Of a stretch of DNA of 64,000 bases, positions 28,759 through 61,829 are shown piece after piece. The translations under genes were made by a program, and so were the position numbers. Below the pieces are notes generated by a model, which was not told where the DNA came from, ran no database searches, and saw only the letters and a list, made by a program, of their open reading frames with translations. Source of the DNA: Dimorphilus gyrociliatus (taxonomy: Eukaryota > Animalia > Annelida); contig CAJFCJ010000024.1 in the NCBI GenBank assembly GCA_904063045.1, forward strand, positions 248,001 to 312,000, in the 5' to 3' direction. The first letter of the stretch is position 1; every line of letters starts with the position of its first letter.

Positions 28759-29495
28759 ATGCCCGCAAAAGAAACCCCTCTCTTTGGTGGCTATATGAGC
28801 ACTATCCTACCACAAAATTTGACTGATGCAAGGTATACTACTACTTTAAAATGAGGGAACCATAATTTAATGTTTTATCTCGTACAATAAAGTAATATAA
28901 GGCAAATCCCTGATAACCAAGAAGTTTTTCTGAGTCAAAACGATCAAAGTTTCATAATTGAACTTATGGAATACGTTGACAAGAGTGACGAAGATGCTAT
29001 AAGGTATTCTATAGTAAAATATGTTAAAACTCGAATGAAAGAGTAAGCAAAATTTCTTATTCAGGACTCACTTTGAGGATTTAAGCGAAGCCAATGATGC
29101 AAATAATCCAGAAAATTCGAAAATTAATTCAATAGAGAAGATTGAAAATTCTAAGCATTCATTGAATGGGTAAATGATTTTATGAACTTGGGAACGGTTC
29201 CTATCTACATAATATTTTTCGTATCAGGTGCGAATCTGCTTACTACGTCTATGGCACTCAGATGGTATCAAAGTTTAAAGAACAAGCTAGAAATAGAGTC
29301 GATTTACATTTGGTTTTATTTCGTCTACCACAATACCTAACAGATATATTAGTAACCTTCAACAATCCAGTAATAGTCGATACTCAAAGTAGCAGTTTTG
29401 ATCAAGCAACTGCAGTTTCCACAGCACTGACAAAAGAAGATTTTGAAAAGATTACAACAAATTTAAAATTATTAGATCCTGCCCTTTTTGGATAA
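28759..29495 (+). CDS. RANGRF: Ran guanine nucleotide release factor (Mog1)
   Basis: Four exons: MPAKETPLFGGYMSTILPQNLTDAS|NIRQIPDNQEVF...SFIIELME...|HFEDLSEANDA...|GTQMVSKFKEQARNRVDLHLVLFRLPQYLTDILVTFNNP, matching Mog1 motifs. Confidence 0.88.
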
Positions 29496-30138
29496 TCAAT
29501 TGTATAAAAGAAGCAAATTAATAAATCCTACAAGTATAAAGTCATTTTATTCATTAGAAAAGCATTAATAGTCCATAAACAGTGCAAAATAGTAATAATA
29601 AAAGATATAAACATATACATAGAAACATACATTATAGCGTCTACAACTTTCTTAAATAATTCAACTTTCGTCCTTCTTTCATTAAAAATGAGAAACAAAA
29701 AGGAGACATTTTAGTTCTTGTGGAAAAATAATGAAAAACAATTAAAAGTGATATGATTTTGGTACTTCGGCGACTAAAACTTCTTTTATATTTAAAGAGT
29801 TTTAGTACATCATTGTAATTAAACAATTTTAATTCTAATCTAATTGCATATACAGTATAAATAATATATATACTCTCTTAGGAAAGATCAGCAAAATTCA
29901 AGTTATTTCTAACCAGATAGATACAATATTAATAATCGTATAAAAAATTATTTGTTTTTTTTTTAATTATTCCCTTGCTAAAGATTTATTTAGAGAGATT
30001 AACACTGAGAGTTAAGGTTTGACAAAAAATCCTTTTGCTTTGAAACTATGTCAGCTTATAAAATACAGTAAAAGGAGATAAGAAATATAAACATGCACAC
30101 ATAGATTTTCGCTTTTACTATGTTTTGTAACTACTTGC

Positions 30139-32716
30139 TTAAAGCTTTGTATCAGCTAACTTTTTATTCTCGAATGGTACAACCCACCCACTATCTTGAA
30201 CTCCGTTTGAAGAATTTGGATCAATTTCTCCCTCGGTTATTATTGTATCTGATACTGGATTTCCATATGATTTCGGTCGCGTTTGATAATCATTTGGAAC
30301 TGAGTGCATCTTTTTTGCGGAATAATAGCCTTTTTGTCTACACTTAATACAAACAAATGACACAATAATAGCCGTTAAACAGACTGTAACAAGAATAGCA
30401 ATTGTGAAGAACAATATTATATTCTTCTCCCAAAGACTCTTCTCTTTTATTTCAAGTAATAACTCAAGGGATACTTCCGGTCGAAGATCGTTCTACATAA
30501 AAAGTTATTTCTGTTAGTATTTGTTGGATAAGTTTAGGCGCGTTCTATAACTACGTCTATTTCCTGATATAGTGTTAGATTACTCTTAAGAAATATTATA
30601 TCCTATATCATAATGAAAAACTAACCAATGTCACACATTCGGAGACGTTTTTAGTCCAGTCCCTTAATCTATCATTTTTATCGAACTCTGCTCCTTTAAG
30701 GTAATCTAATATGTAGGTATAACAAAAATTATCATTTTTATATTTACCTGAGCAACTAATTTGCATAATTTTTTCATCTACGGTTGAATAGGCTTCCAAA
30801 CGTTTACAAGATTTACTTATGGACTTGGTAGTTTTGCATTCCTATAAATTTTAAAGTTTCGTATAAATACTTGATCTTTACACTTGAAACTTTTTCTTAA
30901 TTTTATAGAGAAAAAAGATTCACCTTTAAGCACGTTTTGTCTAATCGACATCGTAAGATGTCAAGAAAATTTGTACGCTCTTCTCGACTAATCGGACGAT
31001 GAAATTTCAAAGTAACAGCTAAATGGGGTTTCTTTGTTCTCTTTCTCTGCATTGATATAGTTAATTATTGATTTTAAATTGCCATTTTCTATCTTTACTC
31101 ACATAAATACAAACTGCCGAATCATTATACGGATTGTCACTCAAATTTGTTAAAACGTGAATAAAACTATCATTACATTTCTGAAACTTAACATCAGCCA
31201 AACGCCAACTTTTTAACATAGCTTGATAATTCGGAGAAGGGGAACCAATTGAATCTGAAGTTTCTGTTGCTCGCCGAACTATCACTTTTTCTTCATCACA
31301 GGTCTAGATATAAAGAATACAATTGGATAAAAATATGCAAATATCTATAAATAGTAATAATATTAACCCCTTCATCAATATTTTCTACGAATAATCTCTC
31401 ATTACTAGCAAAAGTAAATGTTTGTAGCTTGATTAAATCGACCCATTTATTGTTTTTCATAGGTAATACTTTAACTTTTATCAAACCTCCAGGACAATCT
31501 AAATTCAAAATGAATTAATTAAAAATATACTTGAAATATTTAAAACAAAAAAATAAGTTTTTCTTACCAAATATTTGAAAAGGAATGTTCATAGAAGTGG
31601 AACTAATTGTTGATTCAATCTTAGGCGTGTCTAATTAAAAAGTCAACAAATAAATAATAGAAAAAAATTCTATGTAAATGAATTATTGACGTAAAATCTA
31701 ATTTCTGACGGTATTCAATTACTGGGAAAAAGTTCGGTTACTGATAAGAACATGTTAAAACTATTCCCGCCTTTTTTAAATGTATAGTAATATATAGAAT
31801 GTACTGTACAAGTTCGGTATCAAAAAAGCGGATATCATCGTTTCAAAGTTGCATAATCGGTAGAAAATCCAAATACACAAATAAAGAAAAGTAAAGAGAA
31901 AAGATAAAACTTCATTCATTTTGCCGTTCTTCTTCTTTATCTCGGTAGTAAAAAAGTCACAATACACCTATACATTCAAATAAGGGTTTGAAAACCGTAA
32001 TAAATCAAGTATCGTAAGTTAACTAGTTAAGTAACTGCCTTATAGATATCTCTGTCAAAGGTTATTAGATTATCTTAGGATTTCAATAAAGATAGCTTTC
32101 TAATTAATAGATATGTTTCTTTCTTAATAAGAGAATTATAGTTAAACAATTTAGTTTTACTGTAAAATAATCTGCTTTATAAAAACCTTTGATGGCTTGC
32201 GTTTTTAGAGAGAAAAAAAGCAACTGTGCAAAAGATAATCGAACCTGTCGTCGCTTTTGTACTAGGTCTATTTGTTCGTGAAGTTTCGTCTACTTTTTCG
32301 ATAGTTACTTTGCTCGTAGTTGTAAATTCTTTTATAGGAGAGGGGGATTGAGAAGATGTAGAGGTGATAGGTGATATGGTTCTTTTATTGATATTGATAG
32401 TTTCAATCATATTGGTAGTACTTTCAATCAGATTGGTAGTAGTTTCAATCATATTTGTAGTAGTTTCAACCATATTGGTAGTAGTTTCAATCATATTGGT
32501 AGTTTCAATCATATTTGTAGTTTTAATCTTATTAGCTGTTTCAATGTTATTGGTAGTAGGTGAAGAAGGAAGTGATGTAGTTGTTAAATTACTAAGAGAA
32601 GAATTGGATTGAGTAGAGATGGAGTTTAGAGGATCATCGGTTATTGGGTAAGCTACCCCTAGTACAAATGCAAAAAGTATAAATACAGTATATTTAAAGT
32701 TTAAAAATAAAAGCAT
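30139..32716 (-). CDS. Type I membrane sialomucin: signal peptide, Thr-rich stalk, Cys-containing ectodomain, one TM helix, tail ending DTKL; CD34/podocalyxin-like
   Basis: Exons from 32716 (MLLFLNFKYTVFILFAFVLG, TTNMIET repeats) splice in frame via ~31620-31570, ~31500-31370, ~31305-31100, ~31050-30925 and ~30840-30625 into the TM and tail exon ending at 30139. Confidence 0.8.
32400..32560 (-). repeat. Coding tandem repeat (18-21 bp units) encoding TTNMIET
   Basis: About 6-7 degenerate copies of gtttcaatcatattggta(gta) on the + strand. Confidence 0.85.
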
Positions 32717-33164
32717 AGTTAATTAAGTTCTCACGTATGATTAAGATAAAGTTTAAGAAGAATAAAGTCCATTCCATCATCTTTGGCTGCTCTTCTCAGT
32801 CTGAACGGTAGTCGTGAAAACTGATTGGCCAATTACGTAATATAGTCAATACTATGCCTTATCTGACCGCCAACATTCGAGACTGACGGTCGCTCTCGGT
32901 TAAATTTATATGCAAAAACTACCGTAGCGACCAATATGGAGAGGAGAAAGAATTAGAGGAAAATGAGAGGGGGTCGAAAGAAACGGAAAAAATTTGTTTT
33001 TTTGTTTCATAACGCCCCCTATCTTTCCTCACCAAGCTCTGAAGATCTAATGCTTTTACGAGACGATAAATAGCGATAAAAAGGGGGGAGAAAAGGTCGA
33101 ACTCAGAAAATTTTGCCCTATTTGTGTCCCCCCCCCCTTTTTTTCTTTTCCTCTTTCTCCACAC

Positions 33165-37773: not shown

Positions 37774-39224
37774 TTACGGTTCACTGTTCAGATCGTGAAG
37801 ATAGCTGAAAGTTTTCATTTCTTTGCTATTAACGTTCCCTATTTCGATGGGTATTTTCAAAACTACATCTTTATGTAGTTTAGCTCTCTTAGCAGTCACA
37901 TAAAGATTATATTTAACTTTTAGCAAAGAACATGCCAAATCCGATGTAGGTAAAAGATGTTCGTCGATTTCTGTATTAGAGAAAACCATTCGTAGTGTCC
38001 AATCGAAAACCGGCGATTCTCCTGAACTTATCGGACCAGAAGTTAATCGATCAGAGCAATGTTTAAAAGATTTTGTACACGAGAATTTGGACGCTCCCGT
38101 ATTATATTTTCCACTTAATACAAGCATTGCTTCAATACATTCAATAGGCCCACTACTTCGATTGTCAACTTCCACATTCAAAGGAATATCTTCGCCAATC
38201 ACATATCCTGATTTTGGAAGTTTAACTACCAACTGAATGAATCCGTCATTGAAAAGTCCAGTTTGTTGATATTTTTTATCCAATACAGGATTAAGGTTTT
38301 CCAGGTTAGCAGCAACGTCAGATTCCTTTTCAATCCATACTCCGAAGCATGATATCATGCTTCCTCGACTGAATAGATTTCCTTTGTCCATTGTAGCTTT
38401 AATTCTACAACCAGCATAGCCATAATTAACTTTACACGGGTTTAAGCAAGGAACTGAAGAAAATGTGCCATCCAAGGGAATATGAAATTCGAAAGGCCAT
38501 TCGTATTCTCCAGGTCTAAAAGAATCACCAGCCGAAGGATTCTTTGACTTAATATCCGAAAAGTTACCCCCTTTGTTCCACAAGACCATCTTACTATCAA
38601 CATACTTATCTTCAGCTACAGAGTCATAGTATCCTCTGCCAGTGTGTATTCTATAACGAGTGAATGCTCCCCCAGTGAATGCAACATTGATATTTTCCAA
38701 ATCGAATGGTTTAGTTGTTTTTAAGCGCAGTTTACCTCTAACAGTCTCACCTGGATAATAAACTGGTAGAACGCAGTAAGGAATATCACTCTGATCGTCA
38801 CTTCCAGTGTTTGTTAATTCTTGGAAAAATGACTTTTTCATCAAACCATATTCTTTTTCGTCATCAGCATCTTCGTTAGACTCTACATCACCTTTAGGTC
38901 CTTTTTTCTCAAGCCATCTTCCATGATTAATGAAATGATACATTAAACTTATTTGTGCGACTTCTTTAGAATTTTTCTCTCTAATGTTTGAATATCCTTC
39001 GAATTTCCATTTTCCGTTCTCTTTGCGAACCTTCTTTTGCTAAGTTAGGTAGAAAATAACGATAAAAAATTATTGTTTACGCTGAAAAGGTAGAGTAAAT
39101 ATTATACCAAGAGATAATCATAGAGAACAGTTCGGTCACTTAAATCCACATCTATATAGTAGTAGTCGATACCATCAATACTTTCCTCCTTTTTATCAGT
39201 TGGTAAAGCAAAATTATTTCCCAT
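37774..39224 (-). CDS. Arrestin-domain (alpha-arrestin-like) protein, paralogue A
   Basis: VYYPGETVRGKL, PGEYEWPF, GYVIGEDIPLNVEVDNRS and V.L.IPI.IG arrestin-fold motifs. First exon MGNNFALPTD... (39224) splices in phase 0 into the large exon. Confidence 0.85.
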
Positions 39225-40267: not shown

Positions 40268-40645
40268 TCATTTCTTTCCTTCGACCATTATAATATGATA
40301 ACCGAATTTTGTTTTAACAGGAGGGTCTGTATACACAGGATTATTCAAATTACTTATGGGGAGAGCAAAAGCGGCATCTTGAAAAGGTCCTACCATTCCA
40401 CCTCTTATCATCCATCCCAAATCTCCACCACTTCTTGCTTTATCTTCACTATATGTAGCAGCAACTTCATTAAATTTCATTCCACTTTTAAGCTTTTCCA
40501 TAGCTTCCAACACCTTCGACTGTTTCTCACAGAGAATATGGCGAACTTTAACAGAGTTTCCGCCTTTCTTCTCCTTACCACCGCTGGCTTCACCTCCAGA
40601 TGCACCTTTAGCTCCCTTAGAATCTCCTTTACCTTTCTTAGGCAT
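40268..40645 (-). CDS. PIN4: Parvulin-type peptidyl-prolyl isomerase Par14/PIN4, intronless
   Basis: MPKKGKG...[63 protein letters not shown]...[20 protein letters not shown]. Confidence 0.96.
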
Positions 40646-40929
40646 AATTTTACCTAATTTTTTCAAACTGATTGCAAATTTCCAAAAAATTACACAATTT
40701 TGAGCGGCTTTAGGCTTGTCGGGTATACCTAAAGTATGCAACTAGTCGTCCTATGTTGTGAAGAAGACTATCATAAATATAATTTTAACATAGAATTTTA
40801 ACTATAAATCATGTATAAATATCATATGGTAAGAAAAGTGTTAAAGATAGAATTATTATCCCAGTGAAATCACAGATTACAATAAGAGAGAAAAATTTAA
40901 AATATAATTTTCCTCAGAGAATAGTTCTA

Positions 40930-42417
40930 TCAATTTTCCTCGTGCAAATAAGCGAATAGTTTTTCTTCACAGCTATTAAAATTGCCAAGAATAATTGGTA
41001 TTTTAAGCTCCACATCCTTCTGAGTAGCTTTTCTTTTTATCAGGACTATAACTTCATACTTTATCTTTATAAGATTATGGCATAAATTGGATAATGGCAA
41101 CAGATGATCATCGATAGAGCTATTTGAAAAGGACATTTTGAGGATCCAATTAAACTTAGGAGATTCTCCAGATGCAATAGAACCAAACACTATAGGATCG
41201 GACTCTAATTTAACAGGACATTCCACGCAAATTGCTGAGGTATCTGTTCGAAATTTTCCACTTAATCGTACCTTAGCGATTACGCCTTGAATAGTTTCTC
41301 CACTTTTATTATCAATTTCAATGTTGATTGGTATACTCTCTCCCGCAACATATCCTCTTTTGGGAATACTTGCTTCAACATCAATAAATCCATCATTTAA
41401 AATTCCAGTTTTTTGATTCTTCTTCTCGGAAACTTTCAACAAATTTTCTTTGTCGGTAGCTACATCGAAATCTTTTGTTAGCCATATTCCCTGATGAGTT
41501 GCTATATTTCCACGACCACAGCAATTCCCTTTATTCAAACTAGCTTTAACAAAATAATGTATAAAGAAAAATGATTCATTTGTATCGGATAGATGAGGAA
41601 TGGATGGCTGTATATTGGTTCCACTCAGTTTAAAAGAAAAAGGCCATTCATAATCACCTGCTGCTAGACACTTGCTTGAATTAATCCCTGGACTCTTTTC
41701 ATTCATATTCGTAAAAGTTTCATCCTTTTTATTCCAAAGTTCTTTTGAAATGTCTAATAAAACATCCTTCCTCGCAATGTCGAAAGACATAGCTTCTAAA
41801 GAAATTGTGTCAGCTATTTCTGCGGATCCATACAACTGAACTTGTAAAGTTTCTAGATCAATATTCTTATTTGTTTTTAGGTAAACTTTTCCAGAAATGA
41901 CTTCTCCTTCCTTATAAATTGGAATAACTCCAAATGGTGCACATCCAGAAGCCGTATTAAGTTGAATATTCTTAAACATGTCATCGTATCCCTCCTCGTC
42001 GCATCCTTTTGGTAATAAACACTCTTTTCGTTTTGAAGTCGATGATTGGAGACGTTCTGACGACGATTTTTTCTTTTCACCAGTCTGTTCACCAGTCTTA
42101 GGTACTCTCTTTTCAAATGTATCAAGGCTGTTCAAGCCAGCATGGATCAGAGCTATTTGCAGTTTCTTCTTTAAATTCTTATGAGGTATCACCTTATAAT
42201 CGTTAAATTCCCATTTTCCATTCAAATCTTTACATAATTTTTTCTCCTAGAAATTAAGATTTATATTCTAAAATTTATTGTCCAAATATTAATATCTTAC
42301 CAATAAATAATCATAAACAACTCTCCTATCACTTAGGTCTAAATCGATAAAGAAATGATCGATTCCTTCAACTTTTGATATTTTCTTATCCGTTGGCAGG
42401 GACACATTATTACCCAT
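40930..42417 (-). CDS. Arrestin-domain (alpha-arrestin-like) protein, paralogue B
   Basis: IYKEGEVISGKVYL, AGDYEWPF, GYVAGESIPINIEIDNKS. First exon MGNNVSLPTDKK...DLSDRRVVYDYLL is homologous to that of paralogue A, with the same intron position. Confidence 0.85.
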
Positions 42418-58842: not shown

Positions 58843-61829
58843 ATGGAAGGGCTGATATTAGCCGCTCGTAAACAATATCAGAGCGAAATGCAACAGCAGG
58901 CTCGTTTTGAGACGCGCATAGGCCTGCATAAAACTTCAGACGCTAACCCTAAAAATATACAGATGGGTATGGTAGCCGTCTATACATTCTTTCGAATATC
59001 TGCACCTAGGAAGAAGGGAACTAGACTATTTGTTGTCCAAGGTGACGCAGGTGCTGGAAAGAGTGAATTTATAAAGAATATGATTTATGATTGGGCGCAC
59101 AACAAGGCAAGATTTTCCTTAATCTTTAAAAAAAAATCTATAAAAATACTTAATTCCAATAGCTAAGACGTTCTAAGTAGAAAAATGTGTTTTTCTTCTT
59201 TTGAATTTTCTAAATAAGTGTATTTTAATTTCTTGTGAAGATTGATAACCTTTAATAAGATATTCTTTCATATTCTTTAATCTCATCTAAAACACTGAAA
59301 ACGTTCTTTCTATTACTATTCCCATTATTTTCTCCTATTCTAGTCTTAATCTTAAATCTTCGAATAAAAAACAATTACAATAGAAAAAATACCGATTAAT
59401 TATATAAATATATATATATATATACCTTTTAGTTCAAGTTCATACTATTTATTTCAATACTTTAGTAGCCATAAACTTCATTACCTAATTTTTTAAACAT
59501 TAATCAATTAACTAATCCATATGTTTTTTCTTTTAAAGATTTTTATCAATATACAACTCTTCCAAGAATCAGTTGTATCTCTCGTAAATCCCGTAACTTA
59601 GTAACCAAAATTAAAAATATTGTATGTTTAGGCCTATAGCCACCTGTTTTTGTATAAAAGAGCCTTTAAAAATATTCTATATCCTACCTTTGAAATTTTA
59701 TTTTTTATATATAATTTTTTTAAATCAAAAGGATGACAAGGATTTGAAAATGTTCGATATCTTAATGGCTTTGGATGCTGCTAGGATAAAACCTCAATAT
59801 GACTTTTATGACATGTTAAGAAAGCGAGCATTTACAAAGTATAATACCAAAGACGTTGCAAAGTTACTGCAAAATGACAGTAATTATAAACTACTATTGG
59901 CTATTGATGGTGCTGATGATGCTAGAACAATAAATTTAGTAAACTTGTGTATGGAAAAGGTTAATGAAATTCCAAGTGATATTACAATAGTTGTAACTTG
60001 TCGACCGTGGATAGCTGATAAGTTTATTCAACAACATTCTGGTGCAGTAATCCAGTTGGAATTGAACCATTTTATTATTCAACAGAGACGTTTGGTTTTT
60101 AAACTAAATGATATTTCGGATGATAATATTTCCTTTATCGAAAGTGAAATTGAAAAGTTCAAGCTGGATGAAAACCTGTATACAAATCCACTTTGCGTTT
60201 TCCTTGCTGCTCATGTTTGGAGAGATAAAGGGTTATTATGCAAAACAAAGATTGAACTTTACGAAGAAACAGCTGCTCTATTGCATCAGTTTCTCAAACT
60301 TAAGGATTTGAATAGTCAAATGTTACTTTGGAAACAAGTTTACAAAGATGTTAAAGAATGTTCAACAAACTCTGCAGATAAACAAAAAAAAAATTCAGTC
60401 TCATCTGGTTATCCGAGTGATTCTAAATTATTTTTAAAAATCAGATCAATAAGGGAATTTCTAGCGGCGAATTACATAATTAATACACTACCTCCTCAGA
60501 ATGTCAAGGATACAAATATTCCTCTTACTGAGTGGAATCATATTCTTGCATTAACTCAGACTTTAAAATTTTGTTGTGCCCTCTCAATCCAAGCGGCAGA
60601 GATACTTCTGCCAATCGTTCACTCCGTAATTTTACAAAAGCCCGAAGGTCGTGTCAAAGTCAACCAGGACACTTTTCACCCTTATATATTACATTTAAAC
60701 ATTTGGCAAGGTCCAATAAATGTAATCGTTGATCAGGTTACTTGAGTATTTACATTAGAGATTAAAATAACATTAGATTATTAATAATTAACCAATTTTG
60801 TAACGATAGGTTCAATACAACGTTGAAGAAGAATGCTTAAGCGCTCTACACAACACACCTGAAGACTCAAGTCCTCTCCGTCAGTTATTCCCCTACGCTG
60901 TTTGGTACGTAGGGCACACTCCAAAAGTAATGCCAATACCTAAATTCGTCCAAGTTATCGTCCTCAAGGGGCAGGTCCTCGATAGAACTCTTCGCTATAC
61001 GTCCAACCTCCGCATTTTAAACCTCCAAGAAGTTGTCGATCTTGACCAAGTTGGGTCATTTACCAGGTTTTCACAAGATATAATGCAGTCTCGACCGCCA
61101 ATTAGGCAAATAAGAATGGTAGCTTGTGGGTTAGATAGCAACAAATGTCAAGAACTATGTTCATCGTTTCCAATGTTACAATTCCTAACTCATTTAGATG
61201 TTCACGAGAATTATGACATGACAATTGGTGCAGAGTTATTGTTGAAATCTCTAGCAACTGGCGAAGTTCCATTGACCTACTTAAATATGGAAACCTGTGG
61301 TATAACAGAAACAATTTGCCCTGACATCTCATCTTATTTAGTGAAATTAGTGTGTAATTTGGATAAAAATAAAAAAAAATAGTCTACTAAATAAGCCCAT
61401 ACATAATACTCGTAAACTAATATGGGCTATCTATCATACTGTCCTTTATATATATGTATAACTATTCCTATGAGAATTTATCCAACTTAAACACTAAAAT
61501 AATGCTAGCCTCTTTTAAAGAATGTCAATTTTTCAAGAAATCCATTAAGAAGAGGAGCGGTATCTATATTAATAGCTTTATCTACATCTGCTGTTGACCT
61601 GGAGGAGTTACGCCTGGCTTTTTGTAATATGCCTTTGGATATGGCAGATGAAGTAGTTACGCAATTATCGAAAATGAAGAGATTAAATGTTTTAGATTTG
61701 AGATTTAATCATTTCCAACACAGAGTAGTCGATATTCTTTCTGTTTTAAAGCGATTAGAAAAGAAGGTTGAAGTTCGCCTGCAGTACAATTATCCACAGG
61801 AAGAGGGAAATACCGATCTGTTCACTTGA
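58843..61829 (+). CDS. NACHT-LRR (NLR-type) protein
   Basis: Walker A GDAGAGKS, Walker B LLLAIDGADD, sensor-1 VVTCR, YTNPL motif, then LRRs (LQFLTHLDVHEN, LTYLNMETCGI, LEELRLAFCNM, LNVLDLRFNHF). Confidence 0.85.

Follow-up and report, generated by a model that had tools for sequence, protein, structure and literature searches.

An expressed annelid membrane mucin with a podocalyxin-like stalk-span-tail module

We analyzed a 64,000-nucleotide stretch of the genome of the annelid Dimorphilus gyrociliatus (hereafter the window; GCA_904063045.1, contig CAJFCJ010000024.1) and found that the feature at 32780-30139 on its minus strand is a real, expressed gene for a membrane mucin. Its product, 497 residues long, is a type I membrane protein in which a mucin-type outer domain is combined with a stalk-span-tail cassette that ends in a class I PDZ-ligand pattern. 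On balance, we slightly favor the reading that this expressed annelid mucin is distantly related to podocalyxin and endoglycan through the stalk-span-tail module, and that it serves as a spacer and linker at the cell surface. As judged from sequence, homology of the cassette itself to the membrane-proximal and cytoplasmic regions of the vertebrate proteins podocalyxin and endoglycan is likely, though unproven. An initial annotation, made from the letters alone, had proposed an invertebrate sialomucin of the CD34/podocalyxin family. Its description of the protein and of the likely host held up, its start codon had to be moved, and its family assignment stood in part.

A spliced gene for a type I membrane mucin

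The structure of the gene is defined by a transcript. A 2264-nucleotide contig from the public run X1 maps to 30000-32900 of the window with eight joints, and because all eight are of the GT..AG type on the minus strand, we take the contig to be a spliced transcript. The nine coding exons that it defines (E0-E8) stay in frame throughout and give a coding sequence of 1494 nucleotides, or 497 codons, running on the minus strand from 32780 to 30139. A profile search returned the D. gyrociliatus protein DgyrCDS13174 at 100% identity, and an exact look-up placed the locus of that protein on the contig named above, in keeping with the protostome or other invertebrate that the initial annotation had predicted as the source. 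The sequence encoded by E3-E8 recurs without a single change in this 331-residue NCBI protein (hereafter P0005). The public model, which spans 1454 nucleotides, begins at an internal methionine in E2, so that it includes neither the signal peptide nor any of the mucin domain. Both are supplied by the transcript, which adds a signal-peptide exon and a 414-nucleotide mucin exon within 31592-32780 (minus strand), where no gene is annotated.

The coding sequence starts at the ATG at 32780, directly after an in-frame stop. The first exon, E0 (32735-32780), encodes the hydrophobic, signal-peptide-like MMEWTLFFLNFILII and ends in phase 1; the corresponding contig joint is 32657/32734, and its GT..AG borders and the exon phases were checked. 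The initial annotation had instead placed the start at the ATG at 32716 (MLLFLNF...), giving bounds of 30139-32716. In the sole transcript observed, that codon lies inside the 76-nucleotide intron 1 (32659-32734, minus strand), so that the feature extends over 30139-32780. Intron 1 thus holds the ATG at 32716 as the beginning of a second signal-peptide-like open reading frame. If used as an alternative start, through intron retention or a downstream promoter, this ATG would still put a signal peptide into the reading frame of E1. The leaders of E0 (..TLFFLNFILII..) and of the intronic frame (MLLFLNFKYTVFILFAFVL) are similar hydrophobic stretches encoded by similar DNA (32659-32780), which looks like a small local duplication. 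A separate 208-nucleotide contig from run X1 (depth 3.5) maps to 31825-32032, inside the 614-nucleotide intron between E1 and E2, and could stem from unspliced precursor RNA or be a small transcript in its own right.

Read from its N-terminus, the protein has a signal peptide, then a threonine-rich mucin domain and an ectodomain with 10 cysteines; a short stalk leads to the single membrane span, and the tail measures 68 residues. The mucin domain is encoded by E1 (32245-32658, minus strand, as are all exons; 137 full codons, missing from the public model), whose composition is 26% threonine, 14% serine and 6% proline (46% for the three together), and it is predicted to be O-glycosylatable. Tandem Repeats Finder detected within it a 21-nucleotide tandem array (32391-32557) of 6 to 8.6 copies, which encodes TTNMIET-type repeats. 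The serine- and threonine-rich region ends in E2 (31568-31630), the exon that holds the internal start methionine of the public model. The ectodomain, encoded by E2-E7, comprises about 240 residues with 10 cysteines and four N-glycosylation sequons; the first cysteine lies in E3 (31368-31498), three cysteines and three sequons in E4 (31103-31303), and three further cysteines in E6 (30748-30841), with E5 (30924-31046) between these two and the membrane-proximal sequence ..FDKNDRLRDW.. in E7 (30626-30693).

The last exon, E8 (30139-30492), encodes the stalk, the membrane span, the cytoplasmic tail and the stop codon (30141-30139). The transmembrane span (IILFF...SFVCI, 30346-30420, followed by KCRQK) coincides with the single hydropathy peak of the protein, at residues 239-263 of P0005 (Kyte-Doolittle 19-residue mean of 2.97), and aligns with the spans of the relatives described below. 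The tail reads ...KSYGNPVSDTII...NSSNGVQDSGWVVPFENKKLADTKL-stop and terminates in D-T-K-L (30142-30153), the class I PDZ-ligand pattern. The signal peptide, threonine-rich stalk, cysteine-containing ectodomain, single transmembrane segment and quoted tail of the initial annotation are therefore all five present, the tail with its exact letters and with the D-T-x-L-type C-terminus that had been pointed out.

A conserved stalk-span-tail module with interchangeable outer domains

We obtained a measure of selection from L001, a Logan contig of a sister species. This contig keeps E6-E8, including E6 and the membrane-proximal E7, together with their splice sites, and its introns have diverged. Protein identity in the last exon is 87%, and the ratio of nonsynonymous to synonymous substitution rates (dN/dS) for E8 is 0.07 at a dS of 0.89 over 107 codons. 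This comparison shows strong purifying selection on the stalk, span and tail, which together make up a conserved module. We accordingly rejected a non-functional gene, whether a chance open reading frame, a pseudogene or an assembly artefact, on the strength of the spliced transcript and the dN/dS of 0.07. The window is AT-rich (GC content of about 0.30), and low GC content makes long AT-rich open reading frames common, but this is the only point in favor of such an origin, which the eight canonical introns, the existing public annotation and the conservation of the family in other organisms also contradict; we regard it as virtually inconceivable.

A phmmer search with E8 against 1.84 billion representative proteins returned only the sister-species relative P0001 and P0002, a 258-residue open reading frame on an environmental contig from the Joint Genome Institute (JGI), which matched with 48.8 bits (E 5.4e-8). 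A profile word search of European Nucleotide Archive (ENA) and Logan assemblies yielded eleven last-exon open reading frames of 74-104 residues (P0006-P0016), and a scan of JGI metagenome contigs revealed seven further loci, two of them with full-length uninterrupted open reading frames: L008:342-2438 (699 residues), which E8 matches with 49.3 bits, and L010:304-1758 (485 residues). Besides the Dimorphilus gene, the family includes the sister species and about 20 sequences of other eukaryotes in assemblies of environmental or host-associated origin (P0002, P0006-P0016 and L003-L010). E8 falls in the group of P0002 by a significant match over stalk, span and tail and by the motifs that are invariant in it. 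Word-index protein searches, which were limited to proteins of at most 579 residues and may hide long relatives, gave P0001, P0005 and P0006-P0016, and neither an annotated relative in another species nor a PF06365 protein. The L008 and L010 proteins had no exact match in the searched protein collection, and the window holds no paralogue of the mucin gene.

Our family alignments (A2/A3) have 14 rows. The invariant columns across these rows are the P of N-P, D, I, N-G, D-x-G-W-V-V-P and T-K, and the C-terminal L is nearly invariant. An N-P-x-x-D-x-x-I block occurs in all 14 rows, with N replaced by S in four of them. In the rows that reach far enough, a W-E-type motif (W-E-[KE]-[NH]) precedes the span and C-[IL]-K-C-R follows it. 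The tail ends in [DN]-T-K-[LF] in every row of the alignments and in 22 of 23 family sequences overall. The more divergent L007, with D-N-W-I-V-P, and L010, which ends in ..E-T-A-R-F, deviate from this set of motifs.

Outside the membrane, the family members differ altogether. The outer part of L008 combines a Glu/Ala/Pro-rich acidic region with a uromodulin-type D8C_UMOD domain (24.3 bits, E 3.6e-5), and that of L010 is a mucin rich in threonine, alanine and serine. These comparisons show the outer domains of the family to be mutually unrelated and swapped over one common module. The acidic region of L008 is reminiscent of the poly-Glu domain of endoglycan.

One further element of the outer part recurs in relatives. 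E5 opens with a basic cluster, RKRTKK (residues 118-124 of P0005, approximately 31029-31049 of the window), some 100-115 residues away from the membrane span on its outer side. The cluster is conserved among the relatives L008, L010 and P0002, where the forms RRRR, RRKK and RRRRR occur, with a strand-helix piece after it. Speculatively, it may be a proprotein-convertase site that allows the outer part to be shed.

Probable relationship to podocalyxin and endoglycan

CD34, podocalyxin and endoglycan are treated as vertebrate sialomucins (e.g., PMC4970718), and in the searchable literature no previous account of a CD34/podocalyxin family member from an invertebrate came to light. Members of the CD34 family are described as having a mucin domain, a cysteine-containing domain, a stalk, one membrane span and a tail ending in D-T-x-L (PMC10220851), a description that the architecture of the worm protein fits. 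We searched the Atlas, which compares features from a protein language model, with E8. A 'Podocalyxin (Fragment)' cluster ranked first, with a score of 0.96 and 192 of 256 features; PF06365 is present in 99% of the members of this cluster, and 8 of the 20 best matches lie in the PF06365 family. On the Atlas scale, scores below 0.9 are leads only, and a high score counts as strong evidence at a recognition value of at least 2300.

The same search bears on whether the gene belongs to a different known group of type I mucins or proteoglycans (for example CD164/endolyn, MUC1-type mucins, syndecan, collectrin or TMEM154), which we consider very improbable. The TMEM154, collectrin, syndecan-like and glycophorin C clusters, all single-span families, did appear, at scores of 0.80-0.82 that lie within the range of mere leads, and Pfam returned weak matches such as Myc_target_1 and DUF7299, which are far under their cutoffs and for which the membrane span alone accounts. 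The tail blocks discussed next occur in none of these families. No other known family thus comes closer in the Atlas, where the remaining ones reach at most 0.82, and this answers the caveat of the initial annotation that a different type I mucin family might match better.

The tail provides the most specific link. We compared the worm tail by eye with that of canine podocalyxin (PMC4862332), alongside a human podocalyxin peptide (PMC9633294), and found four blocks that are colinear between worm and dog: Y-x-(x)-N-P, N-G, D-S-(G)-W-[IV]-V-P-[LF]-[DE]-N and the terminal D-T-x-L. The first pairs Y-H-D-N-P of podocalyxin with Y-G-N-P of the worm (30256-30267), and the second is N-G in both. The third pairs D-S-W-I-V-P-L-D-N with D-S-G-W-V-V-P-F-E-N, within the worm block NGVQDSGWVVPFEN (30166-30207), which is to be compared with NGELGDSWIVPLDN of canine and human podocalyxin (PMC4862332, PMC9633294). 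The fourth pairs D-T-H-L with D-T-K-L, the D-T-x-L form seen in DTHL and DTEL (PMC10220851, PMC1796660). Within the family, L007 has D-N-W-I-V-P-L-E-E-L at the third block, identical to the vertebrate D-S-W-I-V-P-L-D-N-L at 8 of 10 positions. The worm tail is the closest counterpart of the podocalyxin tail outside vertebrates. The CD34 tail is not known to have a W-I-V-P-L-D block, and the worm tail would therefore be closer to podocalyxin and endoglycan than to CD34.

It is possible, if doubtful, that the gene represents an independent non-vertebrate family of membrane proteins with no common descent with CD34/podocalyxin, and that the tails are alike because disordered tails of apical mucin-like proteins have converged on the same short linear motifs: an N-P turn, a W-x-V-P docking site and a class I PDZ ligand. 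A number of results weigh on this side and against kinship. The initial annotation had named the Pfam profile CD34_antigen (PF06365) as the check to make, and this profile gave no match at E<=10 on E8, on the other exons, or on P0005, L008 and L010, the Dimorphilus gene having been scanned exon by exon and as the 331-residue P0005. Nor did Pfam place CD34_antigen above noise in P0001, P0006, P0008, P0012, P0014, L004 or the tail-exon frame of L007. P0002 alone reached 13.6 bits (E 0.068), over the span and juxtamembrane region, in a match that was not reproduced. The profile fails on all these family members, and the gathering score of 26.3 bits that would mark membership in PF06365 is not attained. 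The phmmer search with E8 found no vertebrate protein at E<=1e-3 among the 1.84 billion representatives. That collection also omitted P0005, yet P0005 scores 252.8 bits with E8 in a local phmmer run; since the library missed even this protein, the absence of a vertebrate match is weak evidence.

Other points on the same side concern the strength of the likeness and the remainder of the protein. The pairwise similarity of the worm and canine tails amounts to about 20-25 bits, a hand-scored estimate of the best blocks that is not significant database-wide, and the Atlas recognition value for the podocalyxin match was 1902, which is low on the scale given above and under its level for strong evidence. 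The ectodomain resembled nothing in Pfam and had no usable match when used as an Atlas query, and within the family the ectodomains are unrelated and interchangeable. AlphaFold2 models were too poor for fold searches, with a predicted local distance difference test (pLDDT) score of 40.8 for P0005 alone and 48.1 for the C-terminal part of L008 modeled from a four-row alignment. The family also has conserved features of its own, namely the C-[IL]-K-C-R motif and the RRRR-type basic cluster upstream of the stalk, for which we know of no counterpart described in podocalyxin. Searches of the PDB with the last exon and with a profile of the tail gave no match.

Convergence would, however, have to account for four blocks that share their order, their place and, roughly, their spacing, since they begin right after the span and run precisely to the C-terminus. 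It would also have to account for podocalyxin being the nearest among all Atlas clusters searched and for the occurrence of intermediates such as the L007 block. In addition, a possible stalk helix (D-x-x-D-R-L) is placed comparably to the D-V-Y-E-R peptide of human podocalyxin (PMC9633294). We slightly favor kinship through the stalk-span-tail module. The assignment to CD34/podocalyxin is supported by the architecture, the Atlas score and the colinear tail, and not by the PF06365 profile, phmmer or the ectodomain. From its sequence features, we have filed the gene as a podocalyxin-like variant that belongs to an undescribed family, so far known only from non-vertebrate sources.

Neighboring genes, proposed role and comparison with known systems

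The mucin gene lies tail to tail with a Mog1/RANGRF gene (29182-29495, plus strand), a neighborhood that is kept in the sister-species contig L001 (1519-1752), and a TMEM17 gene lies upstream. Farther along the window, as read from translations only, there are two similar long single-exon open reading frames of the arrestin-domain-like type (37774-38943 and 40930-42225, both minus strand) with a parvulin-type frame (40268-40741) between them, and a pair of NACHT/LRR-like open reading frames (59624-61382, plus strand).

If the kinship holds, the worm protein would act as podocalyxin does: its bulky glycosylated outer part would cover a free cell surface, apical or luminal, and hold membranes apart, and the tail would link the protein to the cortical actin network. 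DTHL is an NHERF-binding site (PMC1796660), and invertebrates have a single form of NHERF (PMC4603932); the D-T-K-L end is predicted to dock into a PDZ domain of this single NHERF-type scaffold. The conserved N-P and D-S-G-W-V-V-P blocks are putative docking sites for further partners.

We see evenly balanced prospects for a broader reading, according to which the podocalyxin/endoglycan cassette (stalk helix, membrane span, N-P, N-G, D-S-W-[IV]-V-P and terminal D-T-x-L) predates vertebrates and persists as a portable unit in annelids and other non-vertebrate eukaryotes, having been joined to mucin, Glu-rich plus D8C, or cysteine-rich outer domains, and the CD34 family is one offshoot of ancient linkers between the apical membrane and the cortex. 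If the kinship is true, the highly conserved and functionally unexplained W-I-V-P-L-D block, midway along the podocalyxin tail, would be a docking site of ancient origin that merits study, and the link between D-T-x-L and NHERF would be older than vertebrates. One could then trace in animals that bear protonephridia the molecular coat found on filtration cells and on cells that form lumens. Under the broader reading, the occurrence of the cassette in worms with protonephridia would open the origin of the anti-adhesive coat of the podocyte type to testing. A practical gain is that the truncated public Dimorphilus gene model is corrected by a signal peptide and the whole mucin domain.

Compared with known systems, the Dimorphilus gene differs in several respects from podocalyxin and endoglycan. 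Its ectodomain has 10 cysteines and is unrelated in sequence. The HQR-type juxtamembrane ezrin site of podocalyxin is missing, with K-C-R-Q-K-G-Y-Y in its place, as is the acidic stretch that precedes the podocalyxin C-terminus. In gene organization, nine coding exons place the signal peptide on E0 and the mucin domain on E1, and a single exon of this compact genome carries both span and tail. In contrast, the tail occupies its own exon downstream of the span exon in the genomic loci L003, L005 and L006. The vertebrate CD34 tail is probably encoded in the same way as in these genomic relatives, on a separate exon that follows the one for the span. The tails of the environmental family are longer than that of Dimorphilus, in which two of their segments are deleted, and the two share W-E-[KE]-[NH], C-[IL]-K-C-R, N-P-x-x-D-x-x-I, N-G, D-[NS]-G-W-V-V-P and [DN]-T-K-L. 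With CD34, the worm protein has in common the overall architecture and the D-T-x-L end, which is DTEL in CD34 (PMC10220851). The likeness to podocalyxin and endoglycan (PODXL/PODXL2, PF06365) goes further: in each case a type I protein is built from signal peptide, serine/threonine-rich mucin domain, cysteine-containing ectodomain, stalk and one span, and both have tails of about 70 residues that carry N-P, N-G, D-S-W-[IV]-V-P-[LF]-[DE]-N, with the added G in the worm, and the terminal D-T-x-L in the same order.

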